Sequence record: NC_007623.1
Length of the DNA stretch: 64,000 nucleotides
Direction: 5' to 3' (one strand)
Both the position numbers and the translations under genes were made by a program. Below are positions 46,149 through 54,277 of this stretch, piece after piece (the stretch's first letter is position 1; each line of letters opens with the position of its first letter). The notes beneath the pieces were generated by a model. The model had not been told where the DNA came from and did not search any database. It saw only the letters and a program-made list of their open reading frames with translations.

Positions 46149-47591
46149 ATGAAACCGACTAACATTACCCTCTTAGACCCCCGGACGATTGTTCCGGGTG
46201 TCTTTAAACCTATTACGTCTACAGACTCATTTGAAGGGATGACCCAGAACCTCAATGATGACGGTCTCTTCTCCCTTGACATCTTCGGTAAACTGGGTAG
46301 TAAACAACGTGATAACACGGAAGCGTATATCGACGTTAAACTTCCCATCTTCAATCCCACTTACCTAAAAGCCCTTATACAGATCAAAAGTCTGTATCAT
46401 TCAATTTTGAAAGGGTCGGAATACGCGGTATGGGATCCCGAACTGAAGGATTTCATAAAATCGAACATCCTGGAAGGGGAAAAGGGTTTCGCCTTCTTCC
46501 TGAAACACTTCGATGAAACCGTCTTCTCCCTGACCCCCTCTCATAAACGCAAACAACGGGTAGAACTGGCGAACCAATTCCGTAACACGGCGTTAACGGA
46601 TAAGGTCCTGGTCATCCCCGCGGGTCTCAGGGATATCCAATTCAATCCAGATGGTTCCCACACCGAACCTGAAATCACTGAATTCTACCGCGCCTTAATG
46701 TTCCGGGTGAGAGTGATCCTCGGGAATAAGGAAGATGCCCTGAACCCCCTTTACGATACCGTTCGGTGGGGGGTACAGAATGCTTTCTTGGAATTGGATA
46801 ATTACCTCTTTGGTTTACTCCAGGGGAAAGGGGGTGTTCTCCAGCGTCGTATGTCCACCCGAGGGGTTCACAACAGCACCCGGAACGTCATTACCGCCCG
46901 TAAAGTCTCCAGGACACGTTTAGACTTCGACGACGGTGTAGGTCCTAACTCTGCGGACATGGGACTCTACCAAGCCCTGCTGAACTTCCCTTATGTCTGC
47001 ATCAATGCGTTAACCAACGGCTACCTTTCCAACATCTTCACCCCCAGCTCTCAAACCGCTAAGCTGGTGAATACCAAGACCCTGGAATACGAATACGCTG
47101 AAGTCTCCCCTGAGGTGGTAGAGAAATGGACCACCGCCACCGGGTTAATGAAACTCTTCAACGGGTTTGCCGATCCCTCCTTACGGAGTAAACCCATTGT
47201 CATTGAGTGGAAATACTTAGCCCTCATTTATGATGATGGGACTGATGTGTGTGTTCTCCATGACATCAACGATCTCCCTCAAGGGAAAGACCGTAAATGG
47301 GTGAAACCTATCACCTACATGGAACTCTTCTACTTGAGTTGCCACAGTGTCATCGAAGAACAGATTACAGGACAAACCCGGTATCCCATTACGGGGATTG
47401 GCTCTATCTTCCCGGCTAAGGTTAACCTACGTACCACCACCAATGCGAGCCAGCGGGTCATTCGTAATCCGATTGATTGGAGTGTGCGGGAAACCTGTAA
47501 ACGGTTCCCTAAACGTGAAGCCCACCCCGATTACTTCGATGCCATGTCCGTAGACCCCTCTAGAGAAGCTTTGCTCGACAGTGACCATGAT
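46149..47591 (+). CDS. rpoC: virion RNA polymerase beta-prime N-terminal subunit, exon 1 (phiKZ gp180-like)
   Basis: DGLFSLDIFG, VLVIPAGLRD, LQGKGGVLQRR, RYP; ends in DSDHD, the first half of the catalytic motif. Confidence 0.93.
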
Positions 47592-47621
47592 TAGATAGTG
47601 ATGCATGATATAAACTCACTA

Positions 47622-47673
47622 TACAACTCCTATTGTATGCGGAAGTGTTCGCATTCGACCATAAGGAGTTGTA
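47622..47673 (+). promoter_or_regulatory. hairpin sequestering the HNH ribosome-binding site, with internal TATG
   Basis: TACAACTCCT (47622-31) is perfectly complementary to AGGAGTTGTA (47664-73), which includes the Shine-Dalgarno. Confidence 0.7.
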
Positions 47674-47676
47674 AAG

Positions 47677-48948
47677 ATGCTAACGTGTTTTGGAAAGAAA
47701 TACGTGTTGTCTACAACCAACACGGTTTACAATGTCACCGATAAGACAGATGTTCCAGTCCATCGGATGACAGACGGGAATACGTTCTTCATCGCACGGG
47801 GCGATGAAAACGAACTGGTTAAGATCAAACTGGGGTTAATGATCCTCCATGGAGAAGGAAAGTTCCATCTTCCTCTCTCTGAATGGGAACAGGTGAAAGT
47901 AGGTTTTCTGGATGACGATACAGGAAACTTTGCAGCGGATAACCTTTACTTGGTCTATCCTGAAGAGGGCATCCCTTACCCTGAACTCTCTGGGTACTAC
48001 TACATCCCTGGGTTTGAACTCAACGCAATCAACCGAGACGGTGTGGTATACCGAACAGTTAGAAAGAATCTTTACCCACCGTATCTGGGTGGTAACACCG
48101 TTCCTAACAGTTTCTACCCCTTTGTTCGACTGGATGTGGTCAGTGGGGATGAACGCAAGTATGTCCACCGGCTACTGGCGGAGACCTTCGGTAAGCCGCC
48201 TAAGGGCTACCCCAAGCTACTGGTCGACCATAATGACGGTAACAAGATGAACTTCAAGCTCTTTAACTTGATTTGGGTTACCGCTAAGGACAACTCCTTC
48301 AAAGCGTACAACAATCAAGAAGCGAGAGCGGACAATAATCCCTTGGAGGTTTTTGACAGGGAATTAGGTCAAGTCTTTAAGTACGTCAGTCAAAATGAGT
48401 TTGCGAGAACCATGGAGGTGGATTCTTGGTGCATTAGTCTGGTACTCAAACGTCCTCGTTCAGTGTACAAGAACAGGTACGTTCTTCGTCGGAAGGGAGA
48501 TACACGTGACTTCCAAGAGATCTGGGACTATAAGCCCCCTGTGGGTAAGAAGATCCTTGCCCGGAATGTCTTCACCGGTGAAATCACGGTGTATAATTCA
48601 TTGGCGGAGGCCTCTAGAGCAACACAGGTAGGGACAACAGGCATCCTGACGTCCCTGAGTAACACCAACCCGAGATCCGCCTTTAAAGACCTTCAATTCA
48701 AGCGGGAGTCTGACGAGACCCCTTGGCCTGATTTGAATGAATACGAACTGGAATGCATCCGGCGCAAGATGCACCCTGCTACAGCTGTGTATGAAATGTT
48801 TGATTCGGTAACCCAGGAGACGTCGATTGTGTATGGCGTTGATGCAGTTACCCGAATCACCGGAGCCAATCCCCGTACCGTTATCGTTTGCGCACGAGAA
48901 GGTAAGTTGCTCCATTCCCGTTATCGTTTCAAGAAACTTACACGTTAA
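47677..48948 (+). CDS. intron-encoded HNH homing endonuclease with NUMOD1/IENR1-like repeats
   Basis: VHRLLAETF...VDHNDGNKMNFKLFNLIWVTAKDN; three C-terminal repeats such as VYNSLAEASRATQV. Confidence 0.92.
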   Translation: MLTCFGKKYVLSTTNTVYNVTDKTDVPVHRMTDGNTFFIARGDENELVKIKLGLMILHGEGKFHLPLSEWEQVKVGFLDDDTGNFAADNLYLVYPEEGIPYPELSGYYYIPGFELNAINRDGVVYRTVRKNLYPPYLGGNTVPNSFYPFVRLDVVSGDERKYVHRLLAETFGKPPKGYPKLLVDHNDGNKMNFKLFNLIWVTAKDNSFKAYNNQEARADNNPLEVFDRELGQVFKYVSQNEFARTMEVDSWCISLVLKRPRSVYKNRYVLRRKGDTRDFQEIWDYKPPVGKKILARNVFTGEITVYNSLAEASRATQVGTTGILTSLSNTNPRSAFKDLQFKRESDETPWPDLNEYELECIRRKMHPATAVYEMFDSVTQETSIVYGVDAVTRITGANPRTVIVCAREGKLLHSRYRFKKLTR

Positions 48949-49363
48949 CGAGTTTATATCCATCACTTAGTCCGGCTAGGCACGAAAGTCCTAGACCGTA
49001 TTCCTCTGAATTGCTGGGAGTTCACAAAAGTCTGTTGGCTACAACGTAACTGGAAACAGTAAGCGTGAATGCGACCGAAAGGTAGAAAGAACAACAGACC
49101 TGACCTACGCTAACCAATAACGCTAAGGGTCGTAAACAAGGGACAATCAGCCGCTAAGACGCTACCGGGTATTAAACCCTATGCGTAAAGTTCAACGACT
49201 AAGGGAGTTATGACCCTGTACACCTACCAAGGAAGGGGGTGGAAGTGGAGGAGACCTAAGGGGGAATAGACCTATTCCCTACGGTCAAGATATAGTCTGG
49301 CCCTGTTTAATAAACAGGCAGGCACCTGAGTGTGCCGGGTCCTAGTACGGACTGACCACCGCG

Positions 49364-49546
49364 GGCGATCAATTGTCGAGCCATTCTGTTGTAGCGGAAG
49401 ACAGCAAACAACAGGCCTACGAACTCTTTGGGAAACGGGAGTATTACATCAGTGGTACGGGTCGGTTTTTGTACGATCCGATCAATGAACCGATTCTCTT
49501 TATGTTTAAAGCAGCGACGAGCGGCTTAGAGGATATTGAGGTATGA
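49364..49546 (+). CDS. rpoC: virion RNAP beta-prime N-terminal subunit, exon 2 (60 aa, absent from the ORF track)
   Basis: Reads GDQLSSHSVVAEDSKQQAYELFGKREYYISGTGRFLYDPINEPILFMFKAATSGLEDIEV*; completes DHDGD; stop overlaps the next ATG (ATGA). Confidence 0.9.
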   Translation, partial: GDQLSSHSVVAEDSKQQAYELFGKREYYISGTGRFLYDPINEPILFMFKAATSGLEDIEV

Positions 49547-52500
49547 GCAATCCAATTACGTATTCCGAGTTCTTTAAGCACTTTGTGCTGCGTAAGAAAC
49601 AAGACGTTGTAAACCCTAAAGTCCTGGGTATTGGTGAAGTGATCCTTCCTAAGGGGAGTTTACTGCACTTCGTACCGAAGACGATTAACGAAAAGGGACC
49701 GGGTAGTAGTGAAGCGTTTATCAGTAACTTCCCTAAAGAGGTCTTTATTGAGTTTGTAAGGGACGGGTATAAGCCGGTGATGGGGCATGGGCGGACAGTC
49801 GCCTATGACTACCCTAAGGCGGTTAAGGCGTACCGGGCGAGTCACTACATGTACAGCTGGGTGCGAGAGATCAGCACGGTGTACAACAAAGAGAACGTGT
49901 TGGTCGTTAAGAACTACGGGATGATTCCTCAGGGGTTCGTTTACCGTCCGAGTATTTTCGTGAATTATGAAAAATACTACAACATGATGCACCTGCTCAT
50001 TGAGAACATCAATGCAGAAGCCGAGAAAGGGGTGCGTCGGCAGTATATGCGGATTGACCTGCCGTTGAACCTGCCGTCCCTGGTTGAGCTTGAGAAAGAC
50101 TACGGACGGTTTATTGATGGGTTTAATGATGGGCATCCTGTCCTGATGCGCAATATGTTGGAGAGTACGAAGGCTGAGAACTGCTATTGGCTGTTGGACC
50201 TACTGGGGTTCCTGTTTGGCCAGTATTCGTTCAGTTTGTTCGGTAAACTCACCGACCAGGCGTATAAGGATTTGCATATCCTCTTTACGTCACAAAGTAA
50301 AGTCATTGTAGTACAACTGGGGCTGTTGAAGGGTTGGTTAGATGAAACAAATCCTAAAGACGAGAAAACCTACCCCTCTGCTCGGAAAGAGTTTGAAAGT
50401 CTGAAGACATTGACCCGCCATAATGCGGTTAAACGTTTCTATTTGGCTTTGATGAATCTTTCTCGTGGAGGCGTTCCTGAGAATGTACTCATTAAAGAGG
50501 AAACGAAAAATGTCATCCCAATTGCCGGAGAGAAAGGTACCGTTGACCAAGTGGCTGCGGGAACGTCACGAGAAGAAGAAGAAGAAACATCCAATCTTCC
50601 AGAAACCCGAGACCATACTGGCTCGGGCACGGTTCCCCGTGCTGATCGTCCTGCTGGTTCTATCCTTGATGTTTTCAGCCGAAGTGAAGGACCTGGCGAG
50701 GCACATGACGAAGAGCAAGACACAGCGGGAGAACGAGGTGCTGATTCAAATCTTGAAGAGTGGACATCGCCGGTAGATGATGAACTGCTGGAGGTGGAGA
50801 AAGTCCAAACCGAGATCAATACCAACAAGAATGTGTTTAAGACGCCTGAGAGTGGTGTAAAGCGGGCGTTGGAGGAGCGGGCTAAGGAAGGTACGCTGAC
50901 GGTGGCTGAACATGATTTCTTCATGCGTAAAGCGACCCGTTATCAGCACATTGAGATGGAGAACGGTCAAACGTTCGAAGAGTTCATTCAGATCAAACCC
51001 GAAGAGGTTAAAGACCTGGGTGGAGAGATTGAAGGTGAGTTTCTCCCCGTACTGGATGAGAGCATGTTGCGGAGTCGTGCCAAATCCCTCAAGATCGAAT
51101 ATCCTCAGAAGTTTTTACACCGGGATATTGGTCGAATGGTGTTGGGTCTTCAGAACGCTGGCTTTGCGATGAACGACTACCGGCGTGAGAAGGTCGTCAG
51201 CGTAGAAGGCAGTTACGAGGTCCACAGCATTCAGTTACACGAAGTCAATGGTGATCAGGTCACTGTACATACTCGGTTGCCTACGGTGCTGAAAGACGGC
51301 ACCTACGTCATTGATGGTGTTAAGCAACACATGCAACTGCAACGTCGGGAGAAACCTTTCCGGAAGATCAGTCCTCGGGAAGTGGTGCTGTCGAGCTATT
51401 ACGACCGTAAGCTCATGGTGAGTCGTAGTCCGAAGATGGTGGATAACCTCTCTACGTTCATGGTGAAGCAAATCTCCCTCCAGAGTAAGCGGAAAGGGTA
51501 TACGGTCACTAAAGGCAGTACGTGGGATCGCTCCCTTAAAGCCCCCCGGATTTACAGCATTCTGGCTCGTCAGTACAAGTACATTACTGTCGACGGGTTG
51601 GTATTGGACTTCCGGTTGAAGGATCTCCTGGAACTCCACCCTGAGTTCAAAGCCTATACCCGCCCTGATCGGTTCTTGATTGGGGTAAAAGACGGATTAC
51701 CTTTGATCATTGATGATTACGGTAACCTGTACAAAGGGGAAGAGGAACTCGGTACTGTTGAAGACTTGCTCGGTATTGATGTTCGTAAAGCGCCTTTGGA
51801 ACACGTGGTGATTAACATCAGCGGGTATTCGTTTCCGTTGGGAGTGGTCCTGTGCTTCTACTTCGGTATTGATGAACTGTTGCGGGTGATTAAAGCCACG
51901 ACGCGTTCGGTACCCGTAGGGACTCGCCCTAAATTGACGGAGGATGAATACGCGATTCAGTTCAATGACGAATACTTGATCTTTAACCGTCGGGAGAAGC
52001 TCACCACGTTGATCTTCGGTGGAATGCCGAAGTTGAACAACATCAGTAACTTCAGTCGGAGTGATTTGAATAATAACAGTATTTGGAGTGCGTTAATGGG
52101 AGACCCTCGGGTTCGCCCATCTCAGTTCCAGGAAATGAAGAACCTCTTCGATCTCTTTATCGATCCCATTACGAAAGACCTCTTGAAAGAGATGAAGCTG
52201 TCTGAAGACTTCCATTACTTGCTGATTGATGCGGCTAAGGCATTGGAAACGGATTACAGTCGACACGAGGTGGAGATTGAAGAGCAACGCATTGTAGGGT
52301 ATGAACGCTTCGCGGGTCATCTCTACACGGAATTTGTAAAGTCCATTCGTCAATACCGGAATAAGGGGAAAGGACGTAAACACAAACTGGACTTTAATCC
52401 GGACGCGGTTATTATTGCCATTGGTACTGACCGGTCTACGAACTTGGTGGAGGAAGTGAATCCAGTTCACCAAGTGAAGGACCAAGAGGAAGTGACGTTT

Positions 52501-52743
52501 GGGGGTACGGGTGGTCGTAGTGAAATCACCATGGTCAAACGCGCACGGACTCAGCTGGAGAGTTACAAAGGGGTCATCAGTGAAGCCAACAAGGACAGTG
52601 GTAAAGTGGGGTATGTGACCTACACCACCTCTGATCCGGGTATCGCTGATTTCCGAGGCAATGTTGATCCCAAGAACAAACGTACTCCTACCGGTGACGG
52701 TTCGGTAACTATGAACCTGATGTACGGTGGAACGCATGACGAT
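49543..52743 (+). CDS. rpoB: virion RNA polymerase beta N-terminal subunit, exon 1 (phiKZ gp178-like)
   Basis: VIDGVKQHMQLQ, EVNPVHQV...VTFGGTGGR, SEANKDSGKVG; ends in GTHDD. Confidence 0.92.
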
Positions 52744-53158
52744 TGAGCTGTTGTGAAAACAATAGATCACTCAGTCCAACCAGGGAGTAATCCCTTGTTG
52801 CCATTACCTTTAATTGCGGGAACCTACTGAGAGCCTTATCTACCAAACCCGAGCAGGAAACCAACGGGTGGCCAACCATAACGGGTTGGGGACGGTAATA
52901 ACGATAAGGATTGGGGAACCCTACGCAGCGAAGCACCTACGTATTGTCGAGAGGACAAGATAGGGTGAACGTTCAACGACTACGGATGAAATTTCCGGTA
53001 GAGGTGTCAGGATGATACTTCCAAAAGTAAGGTTGCCCTGTATGCTTGAGGTGTGAATAACACTGAGTACAGGGATGAAATATAGTCTCGTCATCTAAGG
53101 GAAAACCTTAGAGCGTGGTGCTACGCGCACCGGCGGATAGGATATCCGTGAAGAAACG
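52744..53158 (+). mobile_element. ORF-less group I intron (415 nt)
   Basis: P1 ACGAU/GUUGU; P AATTGCGGGAA 52812, R GTTCAACGACTAC 52971, S GAAATATAGTCT 53077; terminal G 53158. Confidence 0.93.
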
Positions 53159-54277
53159 GTCAAACGAGCAGTATTCACATCGACTCAGGCCTCTCAAGCA
53201 GTGATGGCTAAGAACTACGAGATCGTTACCCTGAGAACGGGTTACGAGAATGTACTGGCTCACCGGACCTCTGACCTCTACAGCAAAGTAGCCGCTGAAG
53301 ATGGTAAGGTCACTAAAGTGGAGAACGATCGCTTACTCGTCGAATACAAGGACGGAACAACGGACTCGTATCCCTTGGGGTTGGTGATTGGGGAAGCCAG
53401 TGGGGAATATCATCCCCACAGCCGTACCACAGATCTGAAGGTCGGAGATACCTTCCGTAAGGGAGATGTCATCGGTTGGGATGAAAACTGGTTCGGTCGA
53501 GATCCCTTCTGCCCAGGGCAAGTCGGGGTTAAGATGGGTAAAATGTGCCAGATCGTTATGGTGGAAGATCAGGATGTGTACGAGGACTCTATTGCAATTT
53601 CGAAAGAATTGGCGATGGAAGCACGTACCCCATTCATTAAACCCAGTCGGTTTGCCGAGGACGTGTCAAACAACCTGGTAATGCGGGTTAAGGTAGGAGA
53701 TTACGTCGAACAGGACACGATTTTATGTGATATCGAAGAGCCTCACTTGGTGGAGGGCGAGGAGCTTCCTGAGCTCGAAGCAGACATCAACAAACTCGGT
53801 ATCAAACAGATCCGTTCGAAGCATCATGGAAAGATCGTACACATCGATGTTCGGTACAACTCTCCCTTAGACAAGATGTCTGACTCGTTCCGTTCGTTCA
53901 TTGTTCAGAAGGATAAGGAAACGAAACGGAAAGGGTTGGTGGAAGGAACCGGTGTCGAGAACAATGCCATTTCCACGATGTTCAATCTTAATCGTCCCAT
54001 GTTAGGTCCAGGTAAGGCGTTCATTACGTTCTACATCGAGTCGTTAGACCCGAGTACCAATGCGGATAAGTATGTCATTGGGAACCAGATGAAAGCCACT
54101 GTGGGTCGTATCATGGAAAGACCGCTTAAGACCGCCAGTGGGATTGTCATTGATGTGAAGTCGAGCTTTAAAGGGATGTTTAACCGAATGGTGCTCAGTT
54201 TGAGGAACAAGCTGGTTGCTAACGAGTATGGTTACCAAATCACTCGCCAGGCCATTAAACTCTACAGAGGTAAATAA
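53159..54277 (+). CDS. rpoB: virion RNA polymerase beta N-terminal subunit, exon 2 (372 aa)
   Basis: Starts VKRAVFTSTQASQAV, in frame with track ORF 53201; EDSIAIS, VKVGDYV, DKYVIGNQMKATVG correspond to bacterial beta motifs. Confidence 0.92.
   Translation, partial: VKRAVFTSTQASQAVMAKNYEIVTLRTGYENVLAHRTSDLYSKVAAEDGKVTKVENDRLLVEYKDGTTDSYPLGLVIGEASGEYHPHSRTTDLKVGDTFRKGDVIGWDENWFGRDPFCPGQVGVKMGKMCQIVMVEDQDVYEDSIAISKELAMEARTPFIKPSRFAEDVSNNLVMRVKVGDYVEQDTILCDIEEPHLVEGEELPELEADINKLGIKQIRSKHHGKIVHIDVRYNSPLDKMSDSFRSFIVQKDKETKRKGLVEGTGVENNAISTMFNLNRPMLGPGKAFITFYIESLDPSTNADKYVIGNQMKATVGRIMERPLKTASGIVIDVKSSFKGMFNRMVLSLRNKLVANEYGYQITRQAIKLYRGK

Follow-up and report, generated by a model that had tools for sequence, protein, structure and literature searches.

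In Pseudomonas phage EL, a probable group I intron without an open reading frame splits the HDDxxR motif of the beta-like virion RNA polymerase gene

Group I introns in polymerase genes of jumbo phages

Group I introns in the polymerase genes of jumbo phages are already published, among them introns in PhiPA3 and 201phi2-1 that are inserted directly after the second codon of a conserved Asp pair (the DD| site). Here we describe an insert at this site in Pseudomonas phage EL, located in the last 64 kb of its genome record (AJ697969 / NC_007623, 211,215 bp). This stretch of 64,000 nucleotides (nt) is the window to which all EL positions below refer (window 52000 = record 199215), and all of its features discussed here lie on the plus strand. 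The insert (52744-53158) separates gp186 from gp187, both deposited as "RNA polymerase beta subunit," and is very probably a group I intron devoid of an open reading frame (ORF) whose removal joins the two into one gene. Full-text literature searches retrieved no description of the EL intron, although older subscription papers lay outside these searches and an earlier mention in them is possible.

The intron of PhiPA3 interrupts the orthologous beta-like gene of the phiKZ gp178 family (gp211/gp210/gp209) and encodes gp210 (Birkholz et al., Science 2024, PMC11620839; bioRxiv 10.1101/2023.09.30.560319). As in EL, it is inserted after the second Asp codon (AAC GAU GAU|UGUU...), which is followed in the joined frame by [M/V]KR, and the two introns share the guide motif AGUC and a 3' region with P9-P9.1-P9.2 and a UGAAGA..G tail. 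They differ in coding content, with an HNH/NUMOD nicking endonuclease (gp210, 329 aa) encoded within the PhiPA3 intron and no ORF within that of EL, and in an additional three-way P5 extension in EL. Further, the EL intron had no blastn match in PhiPA3 at E<1e-3, and the two are not joined in the tree described below. The intron of 201phi2-1 gp273/274 (GAU GAU|UGUG...CACG|AUG AAG CGG; 336 nt) is ORF-less like that of EL and interrupts the orthologous gene at the same position, HDD|MKR. For this gene, RefSeq gives a joined coding sequence (CDS), identified by mass spectrometry, with a note listing "EL gp186 and EL gp187" as similar, and two spliced reads have been reported for it (Poppeliers et al. 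2024, PMC11512511). The 201phi2-1 intron differs from that of EL in its score against the Rfam model RF00028 (87.4 versus 40.5 bits), in its shorter length, and in its P7.1/P7.2 sequences, and its nearest relative is the PhiPA3 ribozyme.

The classical phage introns of subgroup IA (T4 td, nrdB, and sunY; SPO1; Twort) resemble that of EL in possessing P7.1/P7.2, in their insertion into catalytic motifs of essential genes, in an early in-frame stop codon, and in their sporadic distribution among close relatives. Unlike it, they reside in genes of DNA metabolism, and most have, or formerly had, an endonuclease ORF in a loop of P6 or P9.

An intron-less allele defines the boundaries of the insert

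RefSeq annotates gp186 (PPEV_gp186) at 49543-52746 and gp187 from an ATG at 53204 to 54277. The ORF starting at 49543 ends with ATG TAC GGT GGA ACG CAT GAC GAT TGA, so that its final residues are H-D-D, with CAT GAC GAT ending at 52743 and the TGA stop codon at 52744-52746. The frame of the downstream ORF at 53201 is open upstream as far as 53141, with an in-frame stop codon at 53138-53140; translated from 53159, it reads VKRAVFTSTQASQAV, followed by MAKNYE.... Thus, 14 codons precede the GTG at 53201 (15 precede the RefSeq start codon). No in-frame start codon is present among these 14 codons downstream of the stop codon at 53138-53140; hence, they could be translated only after the insert has left the RNA.

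Eight Elvirus records besides EL match this region. A 2301-nt query was fully covered in six of them in blastn searches, whereas in vB_PaeM_GXNNE2 and GXNNA8 it was covered to 82%, in two pieces, with exactly 415 nt missing and exons 97.2% identical to those of EL. In place of EL gp186 and gp187, GXNNE2 has a single CDS of 4320 nt coding for 1439 aa (1067+14+358), the first 1067 codons of which are colinear with EL exon 1. At the site, GXNNE2 reads CATGACGAT|GTGAAGCGA, where EL reads CATGACGAT-(415 nt)-GTCAAACGA; in a longer alignment, EL CATGACGAT-(415 nt)-GTCAAACGAGCA stands against GXNNE2 CATGACGAT GTGAAGCGAGCA. The flanking bases permit no shift of the gap, and this fixes the insert to the base as 52744-53158. 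It is preceded by a U in the RNA and has G53158 as its last base. The protein of GXNNE2 across the site, ...MYGGTHDDVKRAVFTSTQASQAVMAKNYE... (...GGTHDD|VKRAVF...), is identical to the joined frame of EL, and so the excision of an insert ending in G restores the frame of the host gene. On this basis, exon 1 (gp186, 1067 codons, ending in ...MYGGTHDD) spans 49543-52743, and exon 2 (372 codons plus the stop codon) spans 53159-54277 and consists of the 14 unannotated codons VKRAVFTSTQASQA followed by gp187.

These results bear out at the DNA level what the original prediction, made from the letters alone, had claimed: an exon 1 ending with CAT GAC GAT at 52743, an intron starting with TGA and ending at G53158, a loss of 415 nt with the junction GACGAT/GTCAAA, and an ORF at 53201 that is an exon with 14 codons missed, here recovered as part of the uninterrupted GXNNE2 ORF. 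Together with the alignments presented below, the GXNNE2 protein likewise upholds its joined frame, HDD-VKRAVFTSTQASQAV, as a match to bacterial beta.

The insert is present in EL, phiRU, HHBS8_1, HHBS47_1, IR-QUMS-PaBa1, and MIZ-Pa99, among which it is 98-100% conserved, and absent from GXNNE2 and GXNNA8, constituting a presence/absence polymorphism at a single site among close relatives. The hidden codons of EL and GXNNE2 differ by only two synonymous changes (GTC/GTG and AAA/AAG). As a separate observation, GTC AAA (window 53161 and 53164) occurs in all of the intron-bearing Elvirus alleles examined, and GTG AAG occurs in the intron-less GXNNE2; such markers linked to the intron could reflect co-conversion, immunity of the endonuclease site, or P10 pairing. 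We considered a co-conversion tract, given the differences between EL and GXNNE2 at exon 2 positions +3 and +6 and their somewhat greater density within ±500 nt, and set it aside as inconclusive because similar densities occur elsewhere in the gene. The taxonomy line of the MIZ-Pa99 record gives Straboviridae, though the region is 98% identical to that of EL.

The interrupted gene and its catalytic motif

The region around the HDDxxR motif is homologous to bacterial beta subunits. In phmmer searches against PDB sequences, the GXNNE2 protein matched residues 540-695 of Thermus beta (E=8.4e-9) with the HDD and the R aligned; the GXNNE2 segments aligned over the junction are MYGGTHDDVKRAVFTSTQASQAV and GSVTMNLMYGGTHDDVKRAVFTSTQASQAV. 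The exon 2 piece of EL on its own matched Thermus beta from its third residue, which places the Arg of VKR at Thermus R557. The second Asp has been equated with E. coli D675 in the study of the PhiPA3 intron (Birkholz et al.), and hence the Arg three residues later corresponds to E. coli R678. The identification of this Arg with R678 in the original prediction is thereby supported. The predicted intron would thus lie between the codon for the second Asp and the Val-Lys-Arg codons of the motif, and from the joined sequence we predict that EL gp186 and gp187 are one catalytic subunit of 1439 aa, the orthologue of phiKZ gp178.

The motif is kept uninterrupted in nine relatives from IMG/VR, as DD-[PST]-KR, and, as DD-x-KR, in most of the 60 listed of 295 matched phage records. 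No Pfam domain was found in either EL piece, and a phmmer search with exon 1 against the PDB gave only spurious low-complexity matches to BRISC proteins. The source of the latter is an acidic low-complexity insert at about residues 336-409 of gp186 (50548-50769; EEEEE..., DEEQD...).

A group I fold of subgroup IA type supported by covariation

The RF00028 search with Infernal that accompanied the original prediction as a proposed check did return a match, covering the full model (1-253) at 52709-53113, with E=7.5e-9 on a 701-nt stretch and E=6.8e-7 on the whole window (both strands, 4227 families), values far outside chance, but its 40.5 bits (related introns score 28-88 bits) do not reach the curated gathering threshold (50). 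Consequently, the intron is overlooked by a default Rfam scan, which in the window reported only the first intron of the locus, discussed below. Two segments that the Rfam alignment treats as insertions, the extended P5 and the P7.1/P7.2 stretch (45 nt), account for the modest score. Both the identity as a group I intron and the presence of the P, R, and S elements, claimed from the outset, are supported: P (AAUUGCGGGAA), R (GUUCAACGACUA), and S (AAAUAUAGUCU) fall in the expected columns of the Rfam alignment.

A complete fold can be drawn in which all 116 proposed pairs are standard in EL, and the minimum free energy of the insert lies 3.45 standard deviations below that of shuffled sequences (z=-3.45). 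P1 and its extension (52741-52776) pair exon GAU and intron UGAG (52741-52747) with the guide CUCAGUC (52770-52776), that is, G-3 A-2 U-1 U1 G2 A3 G4 with C27..C33. The resulting 7-bp helix, in which three pairs involve the exon and four the intron, has at the 5' splice site the wobble U52743·G52774 (U-1·G31) that had been anticipated, and a P1 extension capped by GAAA (52748-52765) was checked pair by pair on the sequence. It is followed by P2, a hairpin with a GUAA loop (52777-52800), and the 5' strand of P3, ACCUU (52806-52810), which pairs with AAGGU (53029-53033). P4 (52815-52820/52919-52927; 52815-52927 overall) encloses P5 and a three-way extension resembling P5a/b/c (52823-52916). Beyond P6/P6a/P6b (52928-52972), the 5' strand of P7, GACUA (52978-52982), lies inside the R element and pairs with UAGUC of the S element (53083-53087, as placed by the Rfam alignment), forming a pseudoknot with P3. 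Two further helices, P7.1 (52983-52997) and P7.2 (53002-53020), are situated between P7 and the 3' strand of P3, an arrangement that marks subgroup IA in the classification of Michel and Westhof. The long hairpin P8 (53036-53074) and the helices P9 (53094-53112), P9.1 (53117-53131), and P9.2 (53134-53148) complete the structure, and the tail after P9.2, UGAAGAAACG, runs to the terminal G (omega-G) at 53158, located by the empty-site alignment. In keeping with the ORF-less intron that had been claimed, no sense-strand ORF longer than 49 aa was found in the insert. There is accordingly no intron-encoded homing endonuclease; the nearest is the HNH protein gp185, encoded 3.8 kb upstream within the other intron. 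No terminator-like site was found within 52300-53600.

We assessed covariation in a MAFFT alignment, built from sequence only, of the introns of EL, FishSpeaker, CF8, PS1, VB_ZK_P1, and phiKp_32, the last five of which are introduced in the next section. Standard pairs occupied 71% of the cells in the proposed fold, compared with 39-46% when the 3' partner was slid by one to three columns, and 46 pairs were changed on both sides, compared with 12-25 for the slid versions. On each of five measures, all 500 shuffles fell short of the observed value, and a count with five sequences gave the same picture as that with six. The pseudoknot of P3 and P7 and the P4-P6 domain are thus backed by the comparison: P3 was 100% paired, with two pairs changed on both sides; P4 was 100% paired, with one such pair; and P6 and P6b were 100% and P6a 93% paired, with both-side changes in two pairs of P6a and four of five of P6b. 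P7 was also 100% paired and invariant in all six sequences; being invariant, P6 and P7 are uninformative for covariation as such. In the peripheral helices, both-side changes affected seven of nine pairs of P2, two pairs of P7.1 (91-100% paired), and all six pairs of P9.2 (87.5% paired); P7.2 was 67-69% paired. The P5a/b/c-like part was drawn from EL alone, with P5c missing in the relatives and the alignment poor there. Two variants among the Elvirus copies bear on single pairs: U53G in HHBS8_1 closes the sole mismatch of P2 (C38-G53), and U304C in IR-QUMS-PaBa1 replaces a G·U wobble by G-C (C304-G322).

Introns at the same and an adjacent site in other phages

Beyond PhiPA3 and 201phi2-1, we found introns in the corresponding gene at two positions, the DD| site of EL (site A) and a site 10 nt downstream (site B). 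The intron of Shewanella phage FishSpeaker (GAU GAU|CAAC...AUUG|CCC AAG AGA; 341 nt, locus L007, 1945-2285; RF00028, 28 bits) is ORF-less and at site A, as in EL, with a minimal P1 of 4 bp (GAU|C / GGUC). It is unannotated in its record, where the gene is deposited as two CDSs. Site B, after KR plus one base (...AAA MGG U|), is occupied by ORF-less introns in the Aeromonas phages CF8 (locus L005, 3829-4231) and PS1 (locus L011, 1341-1731) and by introns with an HNH-NUMOD ORF in Raoultella phage VB_ZK_P1 (locus L003, 4473-5906) and Klebsiella phage phiKp_32 (locus L010). All four are unannotated, with the exons on either side entered individually as "hypothetical proteins." The predicted product of CF8 and PS1, KRSLFSG, is identical to that in Aeromonas phage AhC3_1, which lacks the intron; the exact junction in VB_ZK_P1 and phiKp_32 is less certain because the intron-less relative KPN8 reads KRALF. 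The guide sequences covary with the exons between the two sites: those of EL, 201phi2-1, PhiPA3, and FishSpeaker end in (A/G)GUC and pair with exon GAU, whereas the guide ..UGCC of CF8 and PS1 pairs with exon GGU (GAU/GUC versus GGU/GCC).

The introns of CF8, PS1, VB_ZK_P1, phiKp_32, and FishSpeaker align with that of EL over its whole length, the best identity being 60%, with phiKp_32. In a tree built by maximum likelihood from 14 introns, the site-A intron of FishSpeaker groups with the four site-B introns (support, 92/90), which suggests a switch of site within one clade. EL falls in a polytomy outside any well-supported clade, its nearest sequences by path length being phiKp_32 and VB_ZK_P1 (0.78), CF8 (0.88), PS1 (0.92), and FishSpeaker (0.99). 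Given this topology, we dropped the idea that the EL intron belongs specifically to a CF8/PS1 lineage unrelated to the type seen in PhiPA3 and 201phi2-1; sums of blastn bit scores proved too noisy for ranking its relatives. The P9-P9.1-P9.2 region with its UGAAGA..G tail is found in the introns of 201phi2-1, fnug, and CF8 as well as PhiPA3, and this common feature points to one broad family of phage IA introns rather than to cleanly separate lineages.

Splicing in EL and alternative explanations

On the basis of the sequence evidence, we consider it very probable that 52744-53158 is an ORF-less, self-splicing group I intron of subgroup IA type that joins gp186 and gp187. In the pre-mRNA, the guide CUCAGUC would pair with exon GAU and intron UGAG to form P1, so that cleavage would fall at the U52743·G52774 wobble. 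P7 would bind an external guanosine that attacks after U52743, and the freed 3'-OH of the exon would then attack after the terminal G53158, joining GACGAU to GUCAAA. Splicing would restore a single frame of 1439 codons (gp186, the 14 codons, and gp187), with TPTGDGSVTMNLMYGGTHDDVK as the predicted peptide across the exon junction. As the intron starts with UGA, ribosomes on unspliced RNA would stop at its first codon, and the truncated product would end after the two Asp residues without the Arg that contacts the nucleoside triphosphate.

The boundaries, the single ORF running through the gene in relatives that lack the insert, the homologous motif, and a conserved fold with covariation are observed; catalysis and splicing in EL are what we infer from the fold, the essential role of the enzyme, and the viability of six independently isolated intron-bearing phages. 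According to a review of jumbo-phage polymerases, the virion enzyme must transcribe the early genes; since a functional catalytic subunit of this essential enzyme needs the joined motif, self-splicing is the expected outcome. The intron at the same site in 201phi2-1, with its proteomic and limited cDNA support, appears to add to this expectation.

Several points weigh against such a reading. The case for splicing in EL is built from DNA-level facts, and the Rfam score is below the curated threshold. Predicted introns of phiKZ show no splicing in published long-read cDNA data, and polymerase genes of jumbo phages are genuinely split at other positions, as described in the review. Pairing of P5, P8, P9, and P9.1 is poor in the alignment built from sequence only, at least in part through misaligned columns; P8, for example, consists of valid pairs in EL but is 52-62% paired in such columns. 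P10 is weak, with at most three pairs recognizable by eye (GUC with GAU at 52765-52767), and we do not claim it. Lastly, in the MIZ-Pa99 copy (PV472050), single T residues are missing at several positions and the 5' end is changed to GAT|GAGTGTGGAAAAC, as a result either of damage or decay of the intron or of sequencing errors.

Some of these points would favor an alternative in which the insert is the relic of a dead intron and gp186 and gp187 are translated separately, the latter from GTG 53201 or ATG 53204, and assembled as two polypeptides. This would agree with the two CDSs in GenBank and RefSeq and with the true splits elsewhere in the beta and beta' genes of jumbo phages, and both the indirect case for splicing and the Rfam score below the gathering value are compatible with it. 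A split at this point, however, would lose 14 conserved codons, including that for the Arg equivalent to Thermus R557 and E. coli R678. Inspection by eye revealed no Shine-Dalgarno-like sequence ahead of 53201 or 53204, and the close relative GXNNE2 has the uninterrupted ORF. Moreover, the insert retains a complete, covarying ribozyme fold and is conserved at 98-100% in six phages, and we regard this alternative as unlikely.

It is more improbable still that the insert is an unrelated small mobile element or intergenic spacer whose likeness to a group I core is coincidental. A match that stays below the threshold in a default Rfam scan might allow for this, but the E-value for the whole window, the full-length homology to introns of other phages at site A or site B of this gene, the U at position -1, the terminal G, the guide matching the exon, and the exact restoration of the frame upon removal all argue to the contrary.

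Restoration of the frame at the level of protein or translation, through an intein or ribosomal bypass of 415 nt, is the least probable of all: the insert has a ribozyme fold, and it begins with a stop codon and has further stops in the exon frame, which makes an intein impossible. The abstract of the 2005 EL genome paper is said to mention intein-type endonucleases in this phage, which is what prompted the intein proposal and lends it no specific support.

The first intron of the locus, upstream of gp186

The self-splicing intron proposed above would be the second in the virion polymerase genes of EL. Upstream of gp186, RefSeq lists gp184 ("RNA polymerase beta subunit," 46149-47594) and gp185 ("HNH endonuclease," 47677-48948). 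In Erwinia phage RisingSun, an uninterrupted gp229 abuts gp230 with a 1-nt overlap and ends in ...GSDHD GDALSAIAVNGEDSKKEARSLLGKREYYIGGTGDFLYDPVNEPLLFMFKAATSGLNN, whereas EL gp184 stops at ...DSDHD, with the remainder, GDQLSSHSVVAEDSKQQAYELFGKREYYISGTGRFLYDPINEPILFMFKAATSGLEDIEV*, encoded at 49364-49546. Colinearity with RisingSun gp229 thus delimits a first intron of 1772 nt at 47592-49363 (GAU|UAG...GCG|GGC), flanked by exon 1 of gp184 (46149-47591, ending in ...DSDHD) and an unannotated exon 2 of 61 codons (49364-49546, GDQLSS...SGLEDIEV*), the stop codon of which overlaps the ATG of gp186 (ATGA). The gp185 gene lies inside this intron, upstream of the ribozyme core, which is the region matched in the default Rfam scan (48945-49317, 51.1 bits).

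The first intron splits a DxDxD-GD motif that is probably equivalent to the Mg-binding NADFDGD motif of beta-prime. RisingSun gp229 had no match in the PDB, and Pfam searches detected no polymerase domain in gp184; the assignment to beta-prime therefore rests on this motif together with the split sites given in the review, in which the DPBB domain belongs to the N-terminal piece of beta-prime. Both introns of EL would accordingly lie inside catalytic motifs of the virion polymerase, and each follows a GAU codon. A match to RF00028 in Raoultella phage VB_ZK_P1 (locus L003, 754-1117; 34.5 bits), between VBZKP1_270 and VBZKP1_271, clusters with the core of the first EL intron (99/98), suggesting that the beta-prime-site intron is also shared across genera.

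Mobility of the introns and consequences for annotation

The patchy distribution of the second EL intron can reflect loss, recombination, or homing in trans, among which the pattern of single-nucleotide polymorphisms does not decide; having no endonuclease gene of its own, the intron would require an enzyme acting in trans or recombination for any mobility. Tentatively, the DD-x-KR codons might be a homing hot spot at which a single base change in the guide (..GUC/GAU versus ..GCC/GGU) retargeted one ribozyme clade between two sites separated by 10 nt, with ORF-less copies still mobilized in trans, e.g., by the HNH endonuclease of the other EL intron or by an endonuclease of a coinfecting phage. 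If this conjecture is true, ORF-less copies may participate in competition between phages, as has been described for PhiPA3 gp210.

The value of these findings is chiefly in a corrected annotation and in a natural intron-plus/minus pair. In the gene model of this reference phage, gp186 and gp187 would become one protein and gp184 would be 61 residues longer, so that the virion polymerase would have a different number of polypeptides. At least nine other deposited genomes would need the same correction: phiRU, HHBS8_1, HHBS47_1, IR-QUMS-PaBa1, MIZ-Pa99, CF8, PS1, VB_ZK_P1, and phiKp_32. EL and GXNNE2 form a pair with and without the intron in tractable P. aeruginosa phages, which extends the work on PhiPA3 and phiKZ and allows tests of whether an endonuclease-less intron spreads or confers an advantage. 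More generally, the default Rfam gathering threshold appears to miss real phage introns with large peripheral insertions.

Further matches to RF00028 were seen in other phages. In fnug, a phage of the phiKZ species, two strong ones occur in tandem (locus L013, 1916-2211 and 2364-2668; 87.5 and 74.8 bits) between a homologue of PHIKZ055 and a fragment annotated as nonvirion RNA polymerase beta-prime, and another is present in PS119XW (locus L012, 2457-2762).

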